Positions 2,583 to 64,000 of a stretch of 64,000 nucleotides of DNA are shown here, in pieces. Position 1 is the stretch's first letter. Each line of letters starts with the position of its first letter. Under the pieces are notes generated by a model. It made no database searches, was not told the DNA's origin, and saw nothing but the letters and a program-made list of their open reading frames with translations. The stretch covers positions 62,001-126,000 of IMG/VR virus record IMGVR_UViG_3300029945_000001, one strand, 5' to 3'. The translations under genes and the position numbers were made by a program.

Positions 2583-4589
2583 TTAAGAGGCAACATTCAC
2601 TGAGAGAGTAGTATTCCAAACACGATTGCTACGATACCCAGAGAGGGCAACTGTGACGCTAGAAGAGTTTCCGTTCGCCAAGTCAACTGTAGTCTGAGTA
2701 ACCGTTGTAGCACTCGTGATAATGTTATTAAGAGCAGAGCTGATTTCATTATCAATGGACTTTTGTATCTGTTTAAATAACGTTTTTGGCCTAGCATTAC
2801 TTCCCGTAAAACTAGTCCATTTGTCACGAACAATATGTTTAACATAAACAACGTAGTCAACAATACATTCGTCAGAGAGGAGTGAAGAATCTGTTGTATA
2901 AACAGTACGGAGATCAGAGTAAAAAATGACAGAGGGGGTAGCATAGCAAATAATATTAGCGCCACAATCCCAAATCTCCTGAAGAACATCAGGGCTTTCC
3001 GGGATGTAATTGAATGTAGGCCGTTTGAAGACGGTGACTTCGCTTGCGGGGCGAGGTTTAGGCTCAGCCTTAATGGACGTCGTTCCATCGTAAATGCACC
3101 TTTTAATCAATCGGTCAAACGTGGCCGGAACATAGTTAGACCACGAGGCCGTTGTTCCGTCGTTGTTCAACTTAGCGCACTGACCATAGATAGAACCACG
3201 GCACGCCGGAGTTCCCATGATCGAAGATTCAGGATGAAGCAGAATGCGCTGACGCAGAGATGCCATCAGTGCAACATCCGCAGCAGCTGTATTTGGCTTA
3301 AGACTCACGTCCTGAGTAGCCATTGTCAACTGCACATCATCGCGAACATTCATAACACCATCGATAATAGATAATTTATTAGCTAAAGCAAAACCAGAAT
3401 CATAGAAATGAGTAATCGGATAACGATAAACATCCTGAATAGCCGGATATGTAGTACCTTCGAGATAAGCAACAACTAATTCTTCAAACATGTTAACGGA
3501 TGTATCGCCATCAGATCCACCCAATAAATAAAGTGTAACATCTTCATTAATGACTTCGGCCGAATCAGAAGTAATGGTAAAGTGATAATAAGAATTATTG
3601 TTAGAATCCATACCAGTCATGATATTAATCAAATCAGCAGAAGATGTGATTTCAGGAGAAACGTTGAGAATATCAGATGTGATCTTTTTAATATTGTCAT
3701 TATAAGTACAAACATTGTAAGGGAAAGGATTCGCAAAGTTCGTTGTAAGTTCATCACTGATATCAAGATATTGTGTTGTATTGGGATTATAAGCATTATC
3801 AATAAAAGCAAAAGTCTGACTAGGACTACCATACATGTCATAAACAGGAGCAGAAATAGCAGTAGTCGGAGAAACATAAGAAGGAGCAAAGACATAGGTC
3901 ATTGCGCCATTAACAGTTGACAACGAAGCAATGTTACCAGACAGAATAGAATTCGCCTGAGTCTTATCATAAGAAGAATCGTAATATAAGCTAAAACCAT
4001 AATTGTTCATCAGAGATCCAACATCGGCCGCTTCGACGGCCATGATCGGATATGTAGTATATGTAACACCACCATTCGATATTGTGTTCGGAGTTAATTC
4101 ATCAAACTCTTCAGAATCTGTAAGTGCACGAGCAGTCCAATCTAATTCATAACCATCAGCAGTAACCGAAGCACCATTGAGTGTCTGGGGAATAGGGTTA
4201 CTATTTTCATCATAAACTAAAGCACCAGTTGCTGTACGCTGATACTGGACGATTTGCGCCGGAGTCACCGTGCAGAAGATACCAAGAGTGGATTTTGTAG
4301 CGGCCGGATCAACCAGTCGAACAAAACAAATCTGCTGGTACTTGATAGCCTGATTAACAAACAGCGTCTGGTGATTGAAGAACTTCGAGGTGGTATTCAA
4401 GAAGCTCGAACCATAACTAGTCTGAATATCTGTCGTATCGCCGATCAGGGGAAAGTTAGGAACGCCCTTTTCAGTGAACGAGAACATAATAGGCAGATGT
4501 CGAGGCAGGACCGTGAAGGTCTGTCCAGATGCCGCAGAATTATCCTGAACCTGGATATTCAGAGCATTAGGATATGTATATGTCGACAT
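2583..4589 (-). CDS. contractile tail sheath protein (phiKZ gp29-like)
   Basis: 668 aa; N-terminal PRHLP..FTEKG, L.GGSDG, YP....YDSGF, HPES..MGTPACR are typical of phiKZ-like sheaths. Confidence 0.85.
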   Translation of the reverse strand: MSTYTYPNALNIQVQDNSAASGQTFTVLPRHLPIMFSFTEKGVPNFPLIGDTTDIQTSYGSSFLNTTSKFFNHQTLFVNQAIKYQQICFVRLVDPAATKSTLGIFCTVTPAQIVQYQRTATGALVYDENSNPIPQTLNGASVTADGYELDWTARALTDSEEFDELTPNTISNGGVTYTTYPIMAVEAADVGSLMNNYGFSLYYDSSYDKTQANSILSGNIASLSTVNGAMTYVFAPSYVSPTTAISAPVYDMYGSPSQTFAFIDNAYNPNTTQYLDISDELTTNFANPFPYNVCTYNDNIKKITSDILNVSPEITSSADLINIMTGMDSNNNSYYHFTITSDSAEVINEDVTLYLLGGSDGDTSVNMFEELVVAYLEGTTYPAIQDVYRYPITHFYDSGFALANKLSIIDGVMNVRDDVQLTMATQDVSLKPNTAAADVALMASLRQRILLHPESSIMGTPACRGSIYGQCAKLNNDGTTASWSNYVPATFDRLIKRCIYDGTTSIKAEPKPRPASEVTVFKRPTFNYIPESPDVLQEIWDCGANIICYATPSVIFYSDLRTVYTTDSSLLSDECIVDYVVYVKHIVRDKWTSFTGSNARPKTLFKQIQKSIDNEISSALNNIITSATTVTQTTVDLANGNSSSVTVALSGYRSNRVWNTTLSVNVAS

Positions 4590-11649: not shown

Positions 11650-11936
11650 TTTAATTATATGCGCATAGTAGTACATACAACGTTTTAAAAGAAATCTGCG
11701 CACTTATATCTTGTGAAACTAAAATATGTATTTTGTTAAATGATAGAGTGGGCGATAGCCCACTCTATCATCATTTTCTTATATTGATTAACTTTATTGA
11801 CTTGTTCTTATGACTTTAGTTTTTTCAAGTTCAAATGAAACACACAAGATAGATCTGAGGATTAAACGAAGAGTTTTTAAGAAAAACTCTTCGACCGAAG
11901 ATTAATTTATTTATATAAAAAATATTTTATTTATTC

Positions 11937-12054
11937 ATAGTAGTCGTCGTTTATTTACTTTTATTTTCATTAAATCTTTTTATATAAAATTATTAAAATG
12001 TGAAAAAATAAAAGTTTTGACATTATATAGGTTGAAGCCGACGACGACTACTAT
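11937..12054. repeat. 14-bp inverted repeat flanking a very AT-rich spacer
   Basis: ATAGTAGTCGTCGT (11937-11950) and ACGACGACTACTAT (12041-12054). Confidence 0.8.
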
Positions 12055-12325
12055 TCCTTAAGGATTTCTGGATACTAGGATATTTTCGGGAGAAAATAGA
12101 CTAGGAGAAAGAAAGACTTATGGAAGAGAGGAGGAGGAGGCATCAACACACTACAAGATGGTCAGAGAATGTAAAAAATTATAATCATTAAAAACCCTTT
12201 AAAGTAAGAGTATTTTATAAAACCATTAAAATTATATCATTCATCCTCGGAAGAGGGTGGATGGTTTATATTTTTTATTAAAGTCATGATCTTATAGATT
12301 TGTTTTTACCAAAAAAGGAATTGAT

Positions 12326-25816: not shown

Positions 25817-25861
25817 CAATATCTTAAACATATATTACTTATATAGGTACATCTCGAATTA

Positions 25862-44514: not shown

Positions 44515-44636
44515 ATATGGGTACTACCTGGGTAATTCCAGGTAGTACCATTTTTAATTCAATATCATTTTAAGTATATATTACTTTATTGGTCAAATCT
44601 TGACTAATTTTGTTTCTCCTTTTGAAAGGACATCAC

Positions 44637-45689
44637 ATGTCTCTGAACGATTCTAAAGTTGCCCCCGGTATTCCGTCTTTTATTGTTTCTACCCAGCGGC
44701 GGGCACCTGAAGTCCAGACGATCATTGCTGCCAAAAATGCTCCTACGATTTCGTTTTATTTCTGTGGTGGTACTGGCATCAATACTTACAATCGTGTTTC
44801 GATGTTGCTTCCCGAATCTGCCCATATTCAGATCTTCGATACTGCCGATAAATCGAATCGCATCGACACCAATATCGATGTTACGATTCTGACGCCGGCC
44901 GCCGTCGGTTCTGGCGGCGATCGCAATGAAAACAGCCGTACTATCGCCGCTGCCTTGTCTGAAGTCGACCACGTGAATGAAGACATTGCATTTGTCGTTT
45001 TCGGCAAGTCTGGCGGTTCTGGCTCTGTGATCGGTCCGTTGTGGGCCAAAGAACTGCATCGTCGCGATCAGAGCATTCGTATTATCGGCATTGCCATCGC
45101 CGACCACGAATCCTCGCAGCAGCATTCCGACAACATGAAGGGTGCCACTAAGTCGCTGATTAGCATCTGCGAAAAGAATGGCATTTCTATTCCGCTCATC
45201 ATCTACGACAACAAGTATGGGCGGAATATCGTCGACAAGGAAGTCACCAATCTGTTCAAGATGTTTCTTCAGATTTTCACGACGCAAATCAACGAGATCG
45301 ATCCGTCTGATTTCCTGAATTTCATCGCGCACAAGTCGACGACGCCCGGCATCAAGTGCCTGAATGTGCGATGCACCAATTCAAACGAGATCGTCAGCTC
45401 TGCGATCCAGGAAGATTCTGATGTCTATGAATCCATTCTGACTATCATCGGTTCTACCGATGCAGAGTCCGAGTTCAAGCAGGTGTCGGCGACCAGGTCG
45501 TTCAGTGGCATCTTCGAATCTCCTGATTTCCCGTCTATTCGTCTGGCCATTTCCGAATTTTCTTCAAAGTTCGAAGAGCTGGCCAAGGAGACCGAAGATC
45601 ATCTGAATTCGCTTAAGCAGGCCAAAGCCGCTCAGAACAAAGCTTCGGTCTGGAAAGTTTCCGGCGACGAAGATGACCTGATCTCATAA
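44637..45689 (+). CDS. phuZ: phage tubulin PhuZ
   Basis: FCGGTGIN, GSGGDR, tubulin signature GGSGSVIGP, IDPSDFLNF, acidic C-terminal tail; GAAAGGA RBS before ATG 44637; early promoter at 44577. Confidence 0.9.
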   Translation: MSLNDSKVAPGIPSFIVSTQRRAPEVQTIIAAKNAPTISFYFCGGTGINTYNRVSMLLPESAHIQIFDTADKSNRIDTNIDVTILTPAAVGSGGDRNENSRTIAAALSEVDHVNEDIAFVVFGKSGGSGSVIGPLWAKELHRRDQSIRIIGIAIADHESSQQHSDNMKGATKSLISICEKNGISIPLIIYDNKYGRNIVDKEVTNLFKMFLQIFTTQINEIDPSDFLNFIAHKSTTPGIKCLNVRCTNSNEIVSSAIQEDSDVYESILTIIGSTDAESEFKQVSATRSFSGIFESPDFPSIRLAISEFSSKFEELAKETEDHLNSLKQAKAAQNKASVWKVSGDEDDLIS

Positions 45690-59707: not shown

Positions 59708-60031
59708 ATGATTGAAAAAAATATGGACGTCACCGATATCAATGGTGCTAAAAAGAACATCAGCGATCTGAAGGTCTTTGGTAATGGCGATACCTTCCAA
59801 CTTATCTGCAAAGCTAGTTCCCAGGAACAGGGTTGGATGAAGTCGACCAAAGCTATGGAAATCGTTGGTGTTGGCTGTGTTGTCCAGGTGACAACGCAAC
59901 AGCGCAGTCCTGACGGATCGTATGCTGTGGCAGAAGCCGTGACTTTTGTTCCAGGAACAAAGATCATCGGTGATGCTATCAATGGTCGTCGGATCGTTAT
60001 TTTCAATTACAATGATACCGATATCGAATAA
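59708..60031 (+). CDS. conserved phage protein of unknown function
   Basis: GNGDTFQLICKASS..GWMKSTKAM..GC.VQVTTQQ..AEAVTFVPG; GGAG RBS. Confidence 0.7.
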   Translation: MIEKNMDVTDINGAKKNISDLKVFGNGDTFQLICKASSQEQGWMKSTKAMEIVGVGCVVQVTTQQRSPDGSYAVAEAVTFVPGTKIIGDAINGRRIVIFNYNDTDIE

Positions 60032-60057
60032 TATTTGACTCAGTTGATATGGAAAAA

Positions 60058-60147
60058 GGATGGGTGGCCGAGTGGTTTAAGGCAACGGTCTTGAAAACCG
60101 TCGTAGGTGTGAGCTTACCGTGGGTTCGAATCCCACCCCATCCGCCA
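60058..60147 (+). tRNA. tRNA-Ser(UGA)
   Basis: GGATGGG/CCCATCC acceptor, CTTGAAA anticodon loop, long variable arm, TTCGAAT, encoded CCA. Confidence 0.97.
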
Positions 60148-60216
60148 TGTTAAATAAGTTTCAAAATATTTATACATATATATTAATTTATTGGAACCTG
60201 ATCATAAAAAGTTAAA

Positions 60217-61639
60217 CTACAGTTGAATTTCACAGTGTAGCAACCTTCTGCTCTGATCCGCACCGCCCCGCTGTGATCCGTTCTCCAGGAAAATGAGTGT
60301 CCTTTCTCATTTTAGTGTATTAGTCAACTGTGGGCTCTCGACCAAGGTGATGAAAATCATCTAAACCTGGGTATATGTTGAGAGTATAATTAAGATAGTG
60401 TTGTGACGAAGGTAACATCCGCGCCCTTCGCGTCAGGACGGCTAACCACATGCAGGTCAGTGTGCTAGCACAACACCGTAACATCTGCCACTAACATGCA
60501 ATCCGGCGACTATCAGTTTTCGAAGCATGTTTTAAAAGTCCTGATAATGCAGATGTATAGCAAATATCAAGTCGACTTGTAGAAATACAACATTCTGGTC
60601 AAGGTGCATGGAATTAACGGACCTAAACACCTTGTTGCGTCGGTTGACTTGAGAGTTCTCGTGTGGAGTTGTTGTCAATGCCGTGTCCTGGTCCTTGGAG
60701 GGGATGACGCCGTAGAAGATACCAATATGGAATACCGGAATATTCCCACATGAGCACGCTTTGTTTTCATGAGTTTTCTTTCTTTGTCCAAGTTACTGAA
60801 GATGATCTATAGCCATAGATCGAAACCTAGTTACGACGATGGTCTAACAGGCAGGACAAAGTACTGACCAGGTGTGCTGGCGCTGATATTATGCGACGTT
60901 TTATCGTTGCTGTAGATGCTGGCATATCGAAGATGTTTGTTGTGGTAAACACGCCGTTGAGATCAGCTATAGATGATCGATGATGTGGCGGTGTGCAATG
61001 AGATGATCATACGATTCCCAAGAAGGGAACTGTGATTATCTATGACTTATACACGACAGTGATCCATATGTGATCCATTGTGTGTTTGTTCTTTACATTG
61101 TTAATACCACGACGAACGTAATAACTGTGTGTTGTCTGGATAAGGGTCATGTATCCCGCAATCTGGTATCGCACTAACTCTGGTAGATATACAGTTGAGA
61201 CCGTGTCTCTAAATCTACAAGTGAGCATGTGTCTGGTGGGTTTGGGCTGAAAAAATGCCATCTGATCCACCAGACACATCTCGCGAAACCTCTTAAGTGG
61301 CGATACCGTTAGACTGAGACCCAGCTTGCTGACTAGCATTTTGTGCAGTTGGCTATGCGCGATTTATTTCGGGCATCTTCTGGCAGATATGTCGTTCTCC
61401 ACGAACCCTCCAGATCAGAGGACTTGCTCAAGATTGGTATCGTAGAGCAGGTAACTAATTTGTCCTGTAAACTATGTGATGTCGGAAAAGTCAGATCCGA
61501 TGATCTGATCAACATCATACTATCGGATGTAATGCCCCCATGGATGTTAATAGCATTTGCATTATGAGATCGGCAGATATACACATCTGATAGGAGTCGT
61601 ACCCCACACGATGAGCTCTGTGGAATCCAGAGCATCTGC
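60217..61639 (+). ncRNA. structured non-coding block A (back-to-back RNA modules)
   Basis: No credible ORF; about a dozen consecutive domains, each closed by a stem, mostly of 8-13 bp; promoter-like TATATTAA at 60179. Confidence 0.7.
60782..60861 (+). ncRNA. type I hammerhead ribozyme
   Basis: GTTA-CTGAAGA-t-GATCTAT(agcc)ATAGATC-GAAA-CC...GG-TC^TAAC, with stem I extended by CTTTGTCC/GGACAAAG. Confidence 0.85.
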
Positions 61640-61641
61640 AA

Positions 61642-61730
61642 GCGCGTATGGCGAAGCTGGCTGAAACGCATCAGACTTAAAATCTGACACATAAGAAACA
61701 CCGTGGGTTCGATCCCCACTACGCGCACCA
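61642..61730 (+). tRNA. tRNA-Leu(UAA)
   Basis: GCGCGTA/TACGCGC acceptor, TCAGA-CTTAAAA-TCTGA anticodon arm, T arm, CCA; variable region long but weakly paired. Confidence 0.9.
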
Positions 61731-61789
61731 TGAGGGGGTGTAAGTTATAACTTACACCCCTCCACCAACAATTTTCGATGACATACAAT

Positions 61790-61865
61790 GAGCACGTAAC
61801 TCAGTTGGTAGAGTACTCGACTTTTAATCGAGATGTCATGGGTTCGAGCCCCATCATGCTCACCA
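61790..61865 (+). tRNA. tRNA-Lys(UUU)
   Basis: CTCGA-CTTTTAA-TCGAG anticodon arm, 76 nt, CCA; one C.A mismatch in the acceptor stem. Confidence 0.92.
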
Positions 61866-61938
61866 TTTTTTTAAAACAAGAGACGAGCTTATCTATGTCT
61901 TCTTTTAGATATTGATAAACTCATGTTATAAAGGAAAT

Positions 61939-62014
61939 GGACGCGTAGCACAGCGGTTAGTGCCGACCGCTCATAACGGTCTGGTCGTAGGTTCGAATCC
62001 TACCGCGTCCACCA
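61939..62014 (+). tRNA. tRNA with CAU anticodon, probably tRNA-Ile2 (reads AUA after lysidine modification)
   Basis: GGACGCG/CGCGTCC acceptor, GACCG-CTCATAA-CGGTC anticodon arm; lacks initiator features. Confidence 0.85.
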
Positions 62015-62029
62015 ACCTTTTTCCATAAC

Positions 62030-63174
62030 GGTCTAGTTGGAAGTTCAGATCTCTCCGTACTGTAATAGGTAACCTCAGGAGATATAAGCATGACCAGATC
62101 ATGCAGGTTCGTTCTTCATAGATTGAACTTCTAAGACCACATCTGAGGTGCAATGCCTCGGCAGAGATAGCTATGTCATGTAGCATAAGTAAAAAAAACA
62201 CCAACGATGAAGTTGTACTCTCTAAAGAGTTAATGAACATGTTCAGACATCTTAGGTGAACATTTACACCTTCAAAAAGATGGTAGCAACAGTATGGGTG
62301 AGAACAAAGCCATCATGCTGGATATCTGGTAACAGTGTCCAGACCCATGTGCCCCCAAGAAACCATTGCGCTACGAGGATCTAGTGGAATTGATGCCATG
62401 CTTCGCATGCGCACAGGTTATAATAACCACATTGTCCTTATCTGAACATTTTTATTGACTCTCTCGGAGAAAACCCTCGTTTGTTGAAATGTTTATCACA
62501 AAGCTGTTATGACTCAATGACATAACAGTTTACCGCTTAAGGTTAACCATCTATCCCTCATCACCGTAGTACGCCTAGGAGTTGTCCTATGTGGTCCAAA
62601 ATGATGAATGATGAGCGGTGGCGAACAGCCGGGTTTGGAGACTGTGTGATATGGCCTCCTAACTGGGCTCTGTTGTTCTTTCATGCATTGACACCCAGTG
62701 TATCGAGAGAATATCGGTCCGTCTCGAACGGACAACTTTCCTGCTTTAGATCGTATGTTTTGGCATATGTCTTAATCCGCACCGGTCCGGCCGATGTATG
62801 GATATGGGCGTAACTCGTCAACGATCTGCTAACAGGCTGAAGAACATGGAAGGTATACCAGGACTACGATCGCCGGCTCTAACTTAAGTCATCTGGAGTC
62901 ACTCAGGGACTATCCTGCGGTGAACATACGATGAGAGTTATCTTGGGATCATTTCCGTATACACACAACTGCTGTGTCCATAAGTGTTCTGTGTCTGAAA
63001 GCAAGGCATGAAGTGATTTTGTCACCGCCAACCCGCTATGTGGGAGATCCGTGAAAAGGTCTCCCACTACGGTTTCTTTAGTGTAGATTAAGGTGAACAC
63101 CGAACACGGAATGGGCCTCCGCGCAACACAATCCCCCGATGTTGCTATGTTCGGTGTTCTCCTTAGTTTATACA
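62030..63174 (+). ncRNA. structured non-coding block B
   Basis: 20/21-bp stem 62227-62247/62441-62461, 12-bp stem 63095-63106/63148-63159 and many internal hairpins. Confidence 0.65.
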
Positions 63175-63242
63175 TATTAAATTCTTCAGGCAGCTGCTTA
63201 TTTTTTATTTCAAAGATAAATATATATTAATACATTGAATTC

Positions 63243-63322
63243 GCCGCAGTATCTCCTTGGCCTTCTAAGCTATTGAAAGAGTAACTGGACACATGGGGGT
63301 TCGAATCCCTCCTGCGGCGCCA
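63243..63322 (+). tRNA. atypical tRNA-Arg(UCU)-like RNA lacking a canonical D arm
   Basis: Perfect acceptor GCCGCAG/CTGCGGC+GCCA, T arm GGGGG-TTCGAAT-CCCTC, anticodon loop CTTCTAA; only 8 nt between acceptor and anticodon stems. Confidence 0.7.
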
Positions 63323-63393
63323 ATCATTTAAAATATTCTAATCCGGGATCGTCGGTCTGAGTCTGACCTGGAGACCACTAAGATACCATATAT

Positions 63394-63438
63394 CTTCTAA
63401 GCGGCAGGTCGTAGGTTCGAGTCCTACTGGGATCGCTA
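63394..63438 (+). pseudogene. 3' half of a canonical tRNA-Arg(UCU); 5' half missing
   Basis: CTTCTAA-GCGGC-AGGTC-GTAGG-TTCGAGT-CCTAC-TGGGATC-GCTA with no matching 5' acceptor, D or anticodon strand. Confidence 0.7.
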
Positions 63439-63872
63439 AGCTGCCATACATCTTCTTCAGTTTCGGGTCCTTCTGAGTAAGGCATTTGAGTATGCACACC
63501 GATCCATGAAAGTGGGGACAGTGTATCGGTTCTTTTAAAAGTTTTGGCTCCGTTAACTGAGTCTGGACTGCTCACCGGCATGTATGTGTCAGTGTTGTCG
63601 GAAAAGCATACAAATGCATTAATGGTTAGAGGGTGTCCATCTTCGGATCGGCATTTTGGCCATAGTCGCTAGAAATCAGTGAAACGGGCTGGTCTCGGGA
63701 TAAATTGTAAGTCTGACGACCGAGATAAGATTAATGACTTACCAAAGTCCTGGTGTGTTAAAAAACTTATGGTGATGTAACCAGGGATGCGAACTATGTT
63801 TGCCATCGGACGCCAAGCGATCGATGAAACCATTCTAAATTCCACTTAACTTTTAGGTCGATGTTATCGGGC

Positions 63873-63909
63873 TGTCACATGCATGGACGTAATGTCCATG
63901 TATGTGACA
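63873..63909 (+). terminator. hairpin ending the RNA cluster
   Basis: TGTCACATGCATGGAC-gtaat-GTCCATGTATGTGACA followed by TTATTTTTT. Confidence 0.75.
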
Positions 63910-64000
63910 AGTTCATTTATTTTTTAATACATTTTGAGTTTTATACAAAAAATAAATATATATTACTTATTTAGAAATATGGAGTGACTATCATGAATTA

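Follow-up and report, generated by a model that had tools for sequence, protein, structure and literature searches.

A protein-free RNA island in a phiKZ-like jumbo phage, with tRNAs, a rearranged tRNA type, a conserved pseudoknotted motif and a possible self-cutting ribozyme

What is encoded in almost 4 kb of a densely coding phage genome that carries no genes for proteins? This question is raised by positions 60058-63925 of the window, the 64,000-nucleotide stretch (positions 62,001 to 126,000 of IMG/VR record IMGVR_UViG_3300029945_000001) analyzed here from a phiKZ-like jumbo phage. In an earlier note, made from the sequence alone, the region was described as a protein-free operon in which tRNAs are interleaved with structured RNA modules and a ribozyme, and it was proposed that an early-expressed set of small RNAs, or one giant RNA, is cut by a hammerhead and by tRNA processing and acts as decoys or inhibitors of host proteins. 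The observation was confirmed, and all nine closing stems listed in that note are located exactly where it put them. The interpretation, on the other hand, is only partly supported. The stretch is protein-free and looks transcribed on the + strand, tRNAs are interleaved with structured modules, promoter-like starts and a terminator are present, GOLLD and ROOL signatures are absent, and a hammerhead-like domain exists. However, the hammerhead is only a candidate, the giant RNA has no support, part of the "structured RNA" is tRNA debris, and early timing and a decoy or inhibitor role were not examined. The two elements with real comparative evidence, a rearranged tRNA-Arg and a pseudoknotted motif, were missed in the note.

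First, the possibility that the region does code for proteins, either many very small ones or ones read with a reassigned stop codon, was considered. Small ORFs of 30-150 aa exist on both strands, but no ORF is longer than about 150 aa, and the longest is antisense to tRNA-Leu. Allowing read-through of TGA, TAG or TAA gives nothing over 207 aa, and the longest of these frames lie antisense to tRNAs. Ten ORF pieces have no Pfam or PHROG hit, no suppressor tRNA is present, the rest of the window reads well in code 11, and public gene calls leave a 3.96-kb gap here. Thus, a coding role is very unlikely.

Composition and signals also distinguish the region. Its GC content is 0.41-0.46 (0.42-0.445 in one measurement, against about 0.30 for the genome), while most other intergenic gaps are 0.24-0.35, with two short ones at 0.39 and 0.42, which argues against neutral spacer. 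The TATATTAA sites, described in the note as promoter-like, belong to a repeated motif, A[A/G]ATATATATTA[C/A]T, with 59 hits in the window against 27.9 +/- 5.4 expected. Most hits are on the + strand, and many lie 15-60 nt upstream of ORF starts. The strong terminator at 63873-63909 was confirmed. The features, all on the + strand, are as follows.

60058-60147 (+), tRNA-Ser(UGA), CCA encoded, upstream of the first promoter-like motif
60174-60187 (+), promoter-like motif ACATATATATTAAT, proposed start of RNA unit A
60200-61641 (+), block A, orphan and ORF-free, GC about 0.44, a tiled series of closed hairpin domains at 60217-60333, 60334-60385, 60398-60476, 60481-60556, 60567-60652, 60658-60754, 60871-60928, 61165-61307 and 61573-61639
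60782-60861 (+), type-I hammerhead-like domain
61165-61307 (+), three-way-junction domain with a long (about 16-bp) inner helix
61642-61730 (+), tRNA-Leu(UAA), CCA encoded
61734-61767 (+), perfect 13-bp inverted repeat followed by CCACCA, an acceptor-like minihelix, possibly a tRNA remnant or a processing signal
61790-61865 (+), tRNA-Lys(UUU), CCA encoded
61939-62014 (+), tRNA with CAU anticodon, elongator Met or Ile2, CCA encoded
62024-62051 (+), degenerate copy of the anticodon-to-T-arm part of the neighboring tRNA-Met (pseudo-tRNA fragment)
62052-63212 (+), block B, orphan and ORF-free, GC about 0.45, including a 237-nt domain closed by 22-nt arms (62226-62247/62441-62462) and a large hairpin at 63081-63173
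63218-63231 (+), promoter-like motif AAATATATATTAAT (exact match), proposed start of RNA unit B
63243-63322 (+), rearranged tRNA-Arg(UCU), CCA encoded
63382-63435 (+), 3' half of a tRNA-Arg(UCU) (anticodon loop, variable region, T-arm, acceptor 3' strand) without a matching 5' half, a remnant or unusual RNA
63709-63833 (+), new conserved pseudoknotted motif, here called R1
63873-63925 (+), intrinsic terminator, a 16-17-bp stem followed by a T-rich tail, end of unit B

The four canonical tRNAs (Ser, Leu, Lys and the CAU tRNA) were found by both ARAGORN and Rfam, with 63.3 bits for tRNA-Ser in Rfam. The CAU tRNA is not an initiator, since its 1-72 pair is G-C. All five complete tRNAs, including the rearranged one, encode CCA and read A/U-ending codons. 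In addition, there is tRNA debris. The fragment at 62024-62051 is a direct repeat with 79% identity, and the minihelix at 61734-61767 contains a direct repeat resembling the 3' end of tRNA-Met. The half at 63382-63435 scores 24.7 bits with the Rfam tRNA model, below threshold, and it shows 84-91% identity to the 3' halves of tRNA-Arg in Cr30, S-SM2 and Atu_ph07.

Does the remainder fold as RNA? Folding no better than shuffled controls had been named in the note as an outcome that would refute the idea, and this outcome was not observed, although the excess is modest. In fixed 150-nt windows the + strand has a mean z of -1.2 (P=0.002 against 0, P=0.004 against coding controls), whereas the - strand is at -0.42 (not significant), and + is below - in the paired comparison (P=0.015). 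Several windows fold no better than shuffles, and many have z near 0. In block A, 13 side-by-side stems of 8 bp or more can be placed, against 8.6 +/- 1.5 in shuffles (P about 0.005, + strand only), but blocks B and C show no such excess. Since an 8-bp stem with G-U allowed is common by chance (about 20 per 1.4 kb), single stems prove little. Domain z-scores in block A range from -0.1 to -8.3, biased by how the segments were chosen. The domain at 61165-61307 (MFE -61.4 kcal/mol, z -8.3, 0 of 200 shuffles) is one of the two most stable elements of the island, and the hairpin at 63081-63173 in block B has z -8.7. Two inverted repeats underlie the structures of block B.

Covariation among homologous loci, which had also been proposed beforehand as a criterion, could not be tested for blocks A and B (about 2.6 kb together), because no homologue was found in 50,697 phage genomes or in 57 fetched loci, and all public copies of this phage are identical or differ by one base in 16.9 kb. 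A blastn search of the phage collection with blocks A and B found only tRNA-like matches and the R1 match in phiHQ. These results leave room for the view that only the tRNAs, the rearranged tRNA and R1 are functional, and that blocks A and B are filler, consisting of decayed tRNA genes and horizontally acquired DNA of higher GC that has not yet drifted to the composition of the genome. The debris, the lack of homologues, the windows near z 0 and the chance frequency of short stems are in line with this view. However, recognizable tRNA-like sequence is under 15% of the island even at Rfam E<=10 and with R2, a model of the rearranged tRNA family. GC is evenly raised over 3.8 kb, and the structure excess is strand-specific, which DNA-level junk does not predict. 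Moreover, in 36 other phage loci, mostly tRNA islands, stretches free of both tRNAs and ORFs of 60 aa or more are mostly 100-350 nt, and at most 950 nt. Filler is therefore regarded as possible but rather unlikely.

Another possibility is that block A and/or block B is a single large "ornate" RNA of a new class that folds as one unit and perhaps multimerises. GOLLD and ROOL are large phage- or prophage-borne non-coding RNAs of unknown function, often next to tRNA genes, and GOLLD, ROOL and OLE form RNA-only assemblies (PMC12286853). The size (1.2-1.4 kb), the position next to tRNAs, the raised GC, the contiguous closed domains and the long-range complementary segments would fit this idea. However, the Rfam search that had been suggested in the note gave no match to the GOLLD or ROOL model, either at gathering score or at E<=10, and no Rfam hit of any kind in the orphan sequence. 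No long-range helices stand out statistically, no conserved architecture can be shown without homologues, and the tiled local hairpins fit beads on a string better than one global fold. A single ornate RNA thus seems improbable. The one giant RNA of the note has no support, since the second promoter-like motif at 63218 splits the island into two units.

The domain at 60782-60861 resembles a type-I hammerhead ribozyme. Stem I is formed by 60782-60789/60854-60861 plus 60792-60795/60845-60848, and carries an internal loop that could contact loop II. The core CUGAAGA (60796-60802) and GAAA (60822-60825) flank a 7-bp stem II (60804-60810/60815-60821). A15.1-U16.1 opens stem III (60825-60827/60841-60843), and C17 at 60844 is followed by stem I, so that the predicted cut lies between 60844 and 60845. 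All core residues and all three stems are present, but an extra U (60803) is inserted between A9 and G10.1, and with this insertion the core neither qualifies nor disqualifies the domain. An extra residue at this position is tolerated in a viroid hammerhead. Stem III has only 3 bp and a 13-nt loop. A hit to the structural descriptor is expected 0.0005 times per shuffle of the region, and the domain has z -4.1. Against this, no Rfam hammerhead model matches at E<=10, either in the 4.1-kb region or on the isolated 106 nt, and the hammerhead fold (-15.9 kcal/mol) is 8.4 kcal/mol above the MFE (-24.3 kcal/mol). As the nearest-neighbor model ignores tertiary contacts of the core, this difference does not settle whether the active fold is accessible. 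Self-cleavage giving a 2',3'-cyclic phosphate and a 5'-OH, which can be assayed at the bench in a day, was not measured. Hammerheads occur in phage and prophage transcripts (PMC3088659).

From these data, we favor, with moderate confidence, the view that the island is two RNA-only transcription units on the + strand, an expanded tRNA operon whose long leaders and spacers encode stable structured RNAs. Unit A would start near 60190 and carry the 1.4-kb chain of hairpin domains, then tRNA-Leu, tRNA-Lys and tRNA-Met/Ile2, and then 1.2 kb more of structured RNA. Unit B would start near 63235 and carry the rearranged tRNA-Arg(UCU), the tRNA-Arg remnant and a roughly 470-nt RNA that contains R1, and end at the terminator. 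The primary transcripts would be cut by host RNase P and 3'-end nucleases at the tRNAs, and possibly by the hammerhead-like domain after C60844, to release tRNAs for A/U-ending codons of this 30%-GC genome plus a set of non-tRNA RNAs. The end of unit A is not marked by a clear terminator, and tRNA-Ser lies upstream of the first promoter-like motif, both of which fit this view less well. What the analysis demonstrates is the absence of coding potential, the tRNAs, the two conserved RNA families, the excess of + strand structure, and the promoter-like and terminator signals, whereas transcription itself (no expression data were available), the processing steps, ribozyme activity and any function of blocks A and B are inferences. 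A bolder version is tentative and less likely than not. In it, blocks A and B encode one or more new classes of stable structured RNA, made by a phage that may form a phage nucleus, released by RNase P and a variant hammerhead, and acting in trans, for example on host RNA-binding or defense proteins, beside the two further new families.

The closest precedent is bacteriophage T4, a virulent phage whose small RNAs RNAC and RNAD still have unknown functions (PMC9697503). These RNAs sit in the T4 tRNA gene cluster, and have stayed unexplained for decades. Like that cluster, the island is an RNA-only cluster on one strand with promoter-like and terminator signals of its own, mixing tRNAs with non-tRNA sequence. 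The tRNA repertoire is also similar, since the T4 set includes Ser-UGA, Leu-UAA, Arg-UCU, Thr-UGU and Ile-CAU. The non-tRNA part is about 3 kb here, against roughly 0.25 kb in T4, is arranged as long leaders and trailers, and includes a rearranged tRNA, a pseudoknotted motif and a hammerhead-like domain. No direct comparison with rnaC or rnaD was run. Phage tRNA clusters are usually read as codon-supply or anti-defense devices, and this island is an extreme case, in which six-sevenths of a 3.9-kb RNA-only stretch is not canonical tRNA.

The element at 63243-63322 belongs to a phage-specific family of 34 distinct sequences with Arg and Ile anticodons. It has a 7-bp acceptor stem, a T-arm with GGTTCGAAT, a 7-nt anticodon loop with U33 and an encoded CCA, and it lies in a tRNA array, as do its relatives, which sit inside tRNA arrays of many large phages. 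However, the canonical cloverleaf order is not kept. A 3-bp D-like stem (columns 20-22 with 49-51 of the family alignment, 100% paired with changes on both sides) encloses the anticodon hairpin, and the GG-containing D-loop-like segment UAACUGGACACAU follows it, where the variable loop normally is, and precedes the T-arm. This is not loss of an arm as in D-arm-lacking mitochondrial tRNAs, and no description of it was found in a partial search of the literature. The Rfam tRNA model gives 29.2 bits against a threshold of 29, and ARAGORN does not call it. In the family, 97.7% of cells are paired, 18 of 19 pairs have changes on both sides, and the acceptor, T-arm and anticodon helices all covary. 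Model R2 gives 101.8 bits here, 31 bits or less for canonical tRNAs and only 21.7 bits for the half at 63382-63435. Aminoacylation and decoding were not assayed. The family is widespread, as 37 IMG/VR stretches match one strict pattern, while only 1 hit turns up in 185,579 cellular species genomes. Since standard annotation does not see it, phage tRNA repertoires for Arg and Ile are being under-counted. It also poses the question of how synthetases, modification enzymes and tRNA-targeting defense nucleases deal with a tRNA whose D-loop has moved.

The second conserved family, R1, is a pseudoknot of unknown function in jumbo phages. It is shared with phiHQ, Psa21, RP13 and two metagenome contigs, giving six distinct members, and has no Rfam hit. 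P1 (xxGUC/GACxx) is formed by 63709-63713/63736-63740 and P2 by 63749-63753/63781-63785, with CCAAAGUC between them and variable hairpins. The P2 loop AACUUAYGGUGA (pairing at 63769-63773) forms a pseudoknot with the downstream AAACCRU (63829-63833). A possible 13-aa frame in R1 is not conserved, whereas the helix strand beyond its stop codon covaries. HDV-like theta ribozymes are small structured RNAs embedded in phage tRNA regions and are thought to take part in tRNA maturation (PMC10879173). In RP13, R1 ends about 2 nt before the 5' end of tRNA-Leu, but R1 has a different architecture (P1, P2 and a loop-to-tail pseudoknot), lies upstream rather than downstream of the tRNA, and nothing here shows cleavage; whether the Rfam release searched includes theta ribozymes was not checked. 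The copy in the window scores 97.4 bits with a model of R1. All 15 pairs are formed in all six sequences, 7 pairs have changes on both sides, and 0 of 500 shuffles reach the score. The one compensatory change in the pseudoknot, C-G to U-A, is in this copy.

The island at window 60058-63925 lies between a helicase gene plus two small ORFs upstream and a 98-aa antitoxin-like HTH gene that starts at 63994. The latter ORF (16894-17190 of L025, a public copy of this locus) matches PF21716, 'probable addiction module antidote protein', and is an orphan without a toxin gene beside it. On the other side, the 107-aa ORF just upstream of tRNA-Ser (59708-60031) has unusually high GC (0.45-0.49). Its precomputed Pfam label, PF26760 'Lockin', was not reproduced with the local Pfam copy. 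By ARAGORN and Rfam, four canonical tRNAs are found in the island, namely Ser-UGA, Leu-UAA, Lys-UUU and a tRNA with the CAU anticodon. Two more, Thr-UGU and Asn-GUU, lie about 0.7 kb beyond the window end. The phage itself is a jumbo myovirus of 208 kb or more, and is probably a distant relative of phiKZ-like phages, since it has a tail sheath, PHROGs annotated as virion structural proteins, and an ORF at 44610-45689 that matches the PhuZ tubulin PHROG (E 1.4e-29). It may form a phage nucleus. The features discussed below are as follows.

60174: copy of the promoter-like motif
60782-60861: hammerhead-like domain
61165-61307: very stable element (z -8.3)
61734-61767: minihelix with CCACCA, regarded as tRNA debris
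62024-62051: tRNA debris
63081-63173: very stable element (z -8.7)
63218: copy of the promoter-like motif
63243-63322: rearranged tRNA
63382-63435: tRNA debris
63709-63833: R1, a pseudoknotted motif
63873: 16-17-bp hairpin with a T-run
63954: copy of the promoter-like motif for the next gene

Nothing in the island looks coding. The longest ORF is 151 aa and runs antisense to tRNA-Leu, no stop-codon reassignment opens a long frame, and ten ORF pieces hit no Pfam or PHROG family. Indeed, public gene callers leave the same 3.96 kb empty. Hidden coding is therefore the least likely of the readings considered here, and is regarded as very improbable. GC content is 0.42-0.445 against about 0.30 for the genome, whereas most of the other intergenic gaps of the phage are 0.24-0.35, and two short ones reach 0.39 and 0.42.

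All nine stems listed in the earlier note are found at the positions it gave, and its observation of a protein-free, structured island holds. Stems of 8 bp with G-U allowed are common in shuffles (about 20 per 1.4 kb). What stands out is their arrangement. In block A, the first of the orphan ORF-free stretches, 13 side-by-side closed stems can be placed against 8.6 +/- 1.5 expected (P about 0.005), and this is the case on the + strand only. Blocks B and C show no such excess. When arbitrary 150-nt windows were folded, the + strand had mean z -1.2 (P=0.002 against 0, P=0.004 against coding controls), the - strand was not significant, and + was lower than - (P=0.015). The elements at 61165-61307 and 63081-63173 are very stable. 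The earlier note had accepted in advance that folding no better than shuffled controls would count against it, and the island does fold better than shuffles, although the signal is moderate and uneven.

The TATATTAA sites, taken as promoter-like in the earlier note, are part of the motif A[A/G]ATATATATTA[C/A]T, which is enriched in the window (59 hits against 27.9 +/- 5.4). Most hits are on the + strand, and many lie 15-60 nt upstream of ORF starts; examples across the window are found at 25826, 30880, 31561, 34950, 35629, 42135, 44572, 50552 and 63954. It is probably a phage-specific promoter class. Its timing class was not established, since the genes behind the motif are mostly of unknown function and the papers examined give no sequence consensus. 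The copies at 60174, 63218 and 63954 divide the island into two units. The hairpin with a T-run at 63873 ends the second unit, while no clear terminator ends the first.

Two elements have comparative support. First, the rearranged tRNA scores 29.2 bits on the Rfam tRNA model and is missed by ARAGORN. By blastn, relatives were found in phages of Streptomyces, Microbacterium, Bacteroides (crAss-like) and Salmonella, and all but the Salmonella copy sit unannotated in or beside a run of tRNA genes. Cultured carriers include Streptomyces phage Stanimal and Microbacterium phage Zooman. A strict pattern found 37 IMG/VR stretches, mostly contigs of 40-415 kb, but only one hit in 185,579 cellular species genomes. 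This single hit is in CADBGE010000001.1, a 400-kb contig of an 'Erysipelotrichaceae' MAG (locus L069), which may be a misbinned huge phage. Among the fetched loci, relatives are present in L010, L014-L020 and L036-L068, and some contigs carry two or three copies (L043, L048 and L066). On 34 distinct sequences the proposed structure is 97.7% paired, and 18 of 19 pairs show changes on both sides. It consists of a 7-bp acceptor stem, a 3-bp D-like stem that encloses the anticodon hairpin, a conserved segment UAAYUGGNYACAU that resembles a D-loop but occupies the variable-loop position, and the T-arm. The anticodons are those for Arg (UCU, CCU, ACG, UCG; 16 sequences), Ile (GAU, UAU; 14 sequences) and CAU (4 sequences). 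Model R2, made for this tRNA type, separates members (54-102 bits) from canonical tRNAs (31 bits or less). The segment at 63382-63435 was considered as a second rearranged tRNA, but this reading was rejected because R2 gives it only 21.7 bits. The rearranged tRNA belongs to a phage-specific family of core-rearranged tRNAs that ARAGORN misses and GenBank records leave unannotated inside tRNA arrays.

Second, the R1 motif matches an intergenic stretch of Pseudomonas phage phiHQ, and through phiHQ it was found in Psa21 and Ralstonia phage RP13. Strict exact patterns in IMG/VR returned only this phage and Psa21, and a looser pattern added four chance matches, at least two of them inside one long ORF. 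A metagenome scan added two more distinct sequences. P1, P2 and a pseudoknot between the P2 loop and a downstream AAACCRU are paired in every sequence. Seven of 15 pairs change on both sides, and 0 of 500 shuffles reach the score. The single compensatory change in the pseudoknot is in the window copy. Reading R1 as a 13-aa ORF was rejected, since start and stop are not conserved and the helix strand beyond the stop covaries. The contexts of the motif differ. In RP13 it ends about 2 nt before the 5' end of tRNA-Leu, in phiHQ and Psa21 it lies upstream of an ORF that Psa21 annotates as an RNA-polymerase subunit gene, in one soil contig it precedes a small ORF, and here it precedes the terminator. 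R1 has no Rfam match, and a search of cellular genomes gave no hit. In phiHQ, a roughly 210-nt non-coding segment downstream of R1 (3113-3319 of locus L009; 47688-47899 of phiKZ AF399011.1) is conserved at 84-99% in dozens of phiKZ-like phages, and is unannotated in most of the listed records.

The ribozyme proposed in the earlier note is a candidate only. The domain at 60782-60861 fits a type-I hammerhead descriptor with CUGAAGA, a 7-bp stem II, GAAA, A15.1-U16.1, C17 at 60844, and a stem I with an internal loop, and shuffles of the region give 0.0005 hits. However, it has an extra U after A9, no Rfam model matches it even on the isolated piece, and the hammerhead fold is 8.4 kcal/mol above the MFE. 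The 5' strand and loop of stem II (60801-60813) have a 13-nt complement (92%) 150 nt downstream (60966-60978), a possible alternative pairing that would compete with the ribozyme fold. A second descriptor hit at 11855 was rejected as clearly spurious, because its stems are A-U pairs buried in a 12-bp hairpin. This hit lies in a 676-nt AT-rich intergenic gap (11650-12325) that holds two strong hairpins, near 11742-11769 and 11866-11893. It shows that shuffle-based expectations understate false positives, so that the shuffle null is optimistic. Activity of the domain at 60782-60861 is thought to be about as likely as not.

Blocks A and B outside these elements, about 2.6 kb, have no homologue in the collections searched. 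In a blastn search of 50,697 phage genomes the blocks themselves gave nothing, and the only hits were tRNA-like pieces and R1. Local blastn and nhmmer against 57 fetched loci, about 30 of them phage tRNA islands, matched only R1. The single domains of the blocks were not searched by nhmmer or cmsearch against all IMG/VR and Logan contigs. Comparison with Rfam, which had been put forward beforehand as a check on novelty, was made at gathering score and at E<=10 on the region, on the hammerhead piece and on the phiHQ locus, and only tRNAs were found. Covariation among homologues had likewise been put forward as a test, and it is the decisive one, but a search anchored on the helicase returned only 100%-identical contigs, and every public copy of this phage is identical apart from a single base. 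The source samples are the IMG samples 3300029883, 3300029945, 3300029952 and 3300030688, and ENA ERZ27249442. The nearest other helicase homologue is 44% identical, its neighbourhood is different and synteny is lost, so that present data gave no alignment in which the blocks could be examined for covariation. Some of the sequence is tRNA debris (61734-61767, 62024-62051 and 63382-63435), which makes up under 15% of the island. The main rival explanation, that the orphan blocks are filler, is possible but less likely than the reading favoured here.

The best-supported reading, held with moderate confidence, is that the island is an expanded tRNA operon in two RNA-only units, with embedded stable RNAs. 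The closest precedents are the T4 small RNAs RNAC and RNAD, whose functions are still unknown (PMC9697503), and the large RNAs GOLLD and ROOL (PMC12286853). The island is not a member of either of the latter two, and a single giant ornate RNA, one of the alternatives raised in the earlier note, is unlikely. The interpretation in that note is supported only in part, and its ideas of early expression and a decoy role are neither supported nor excluded. There is also a 16-nt complementarity (94%) between the leader and 5' end of tRNA-Ser (60048-60063) and the trailer of tRNA-Met (62012-62027), which brackets about 2 kb. About 0.1 such pairs are expected by chance in the region. It could be a processing stem or a coincidence.
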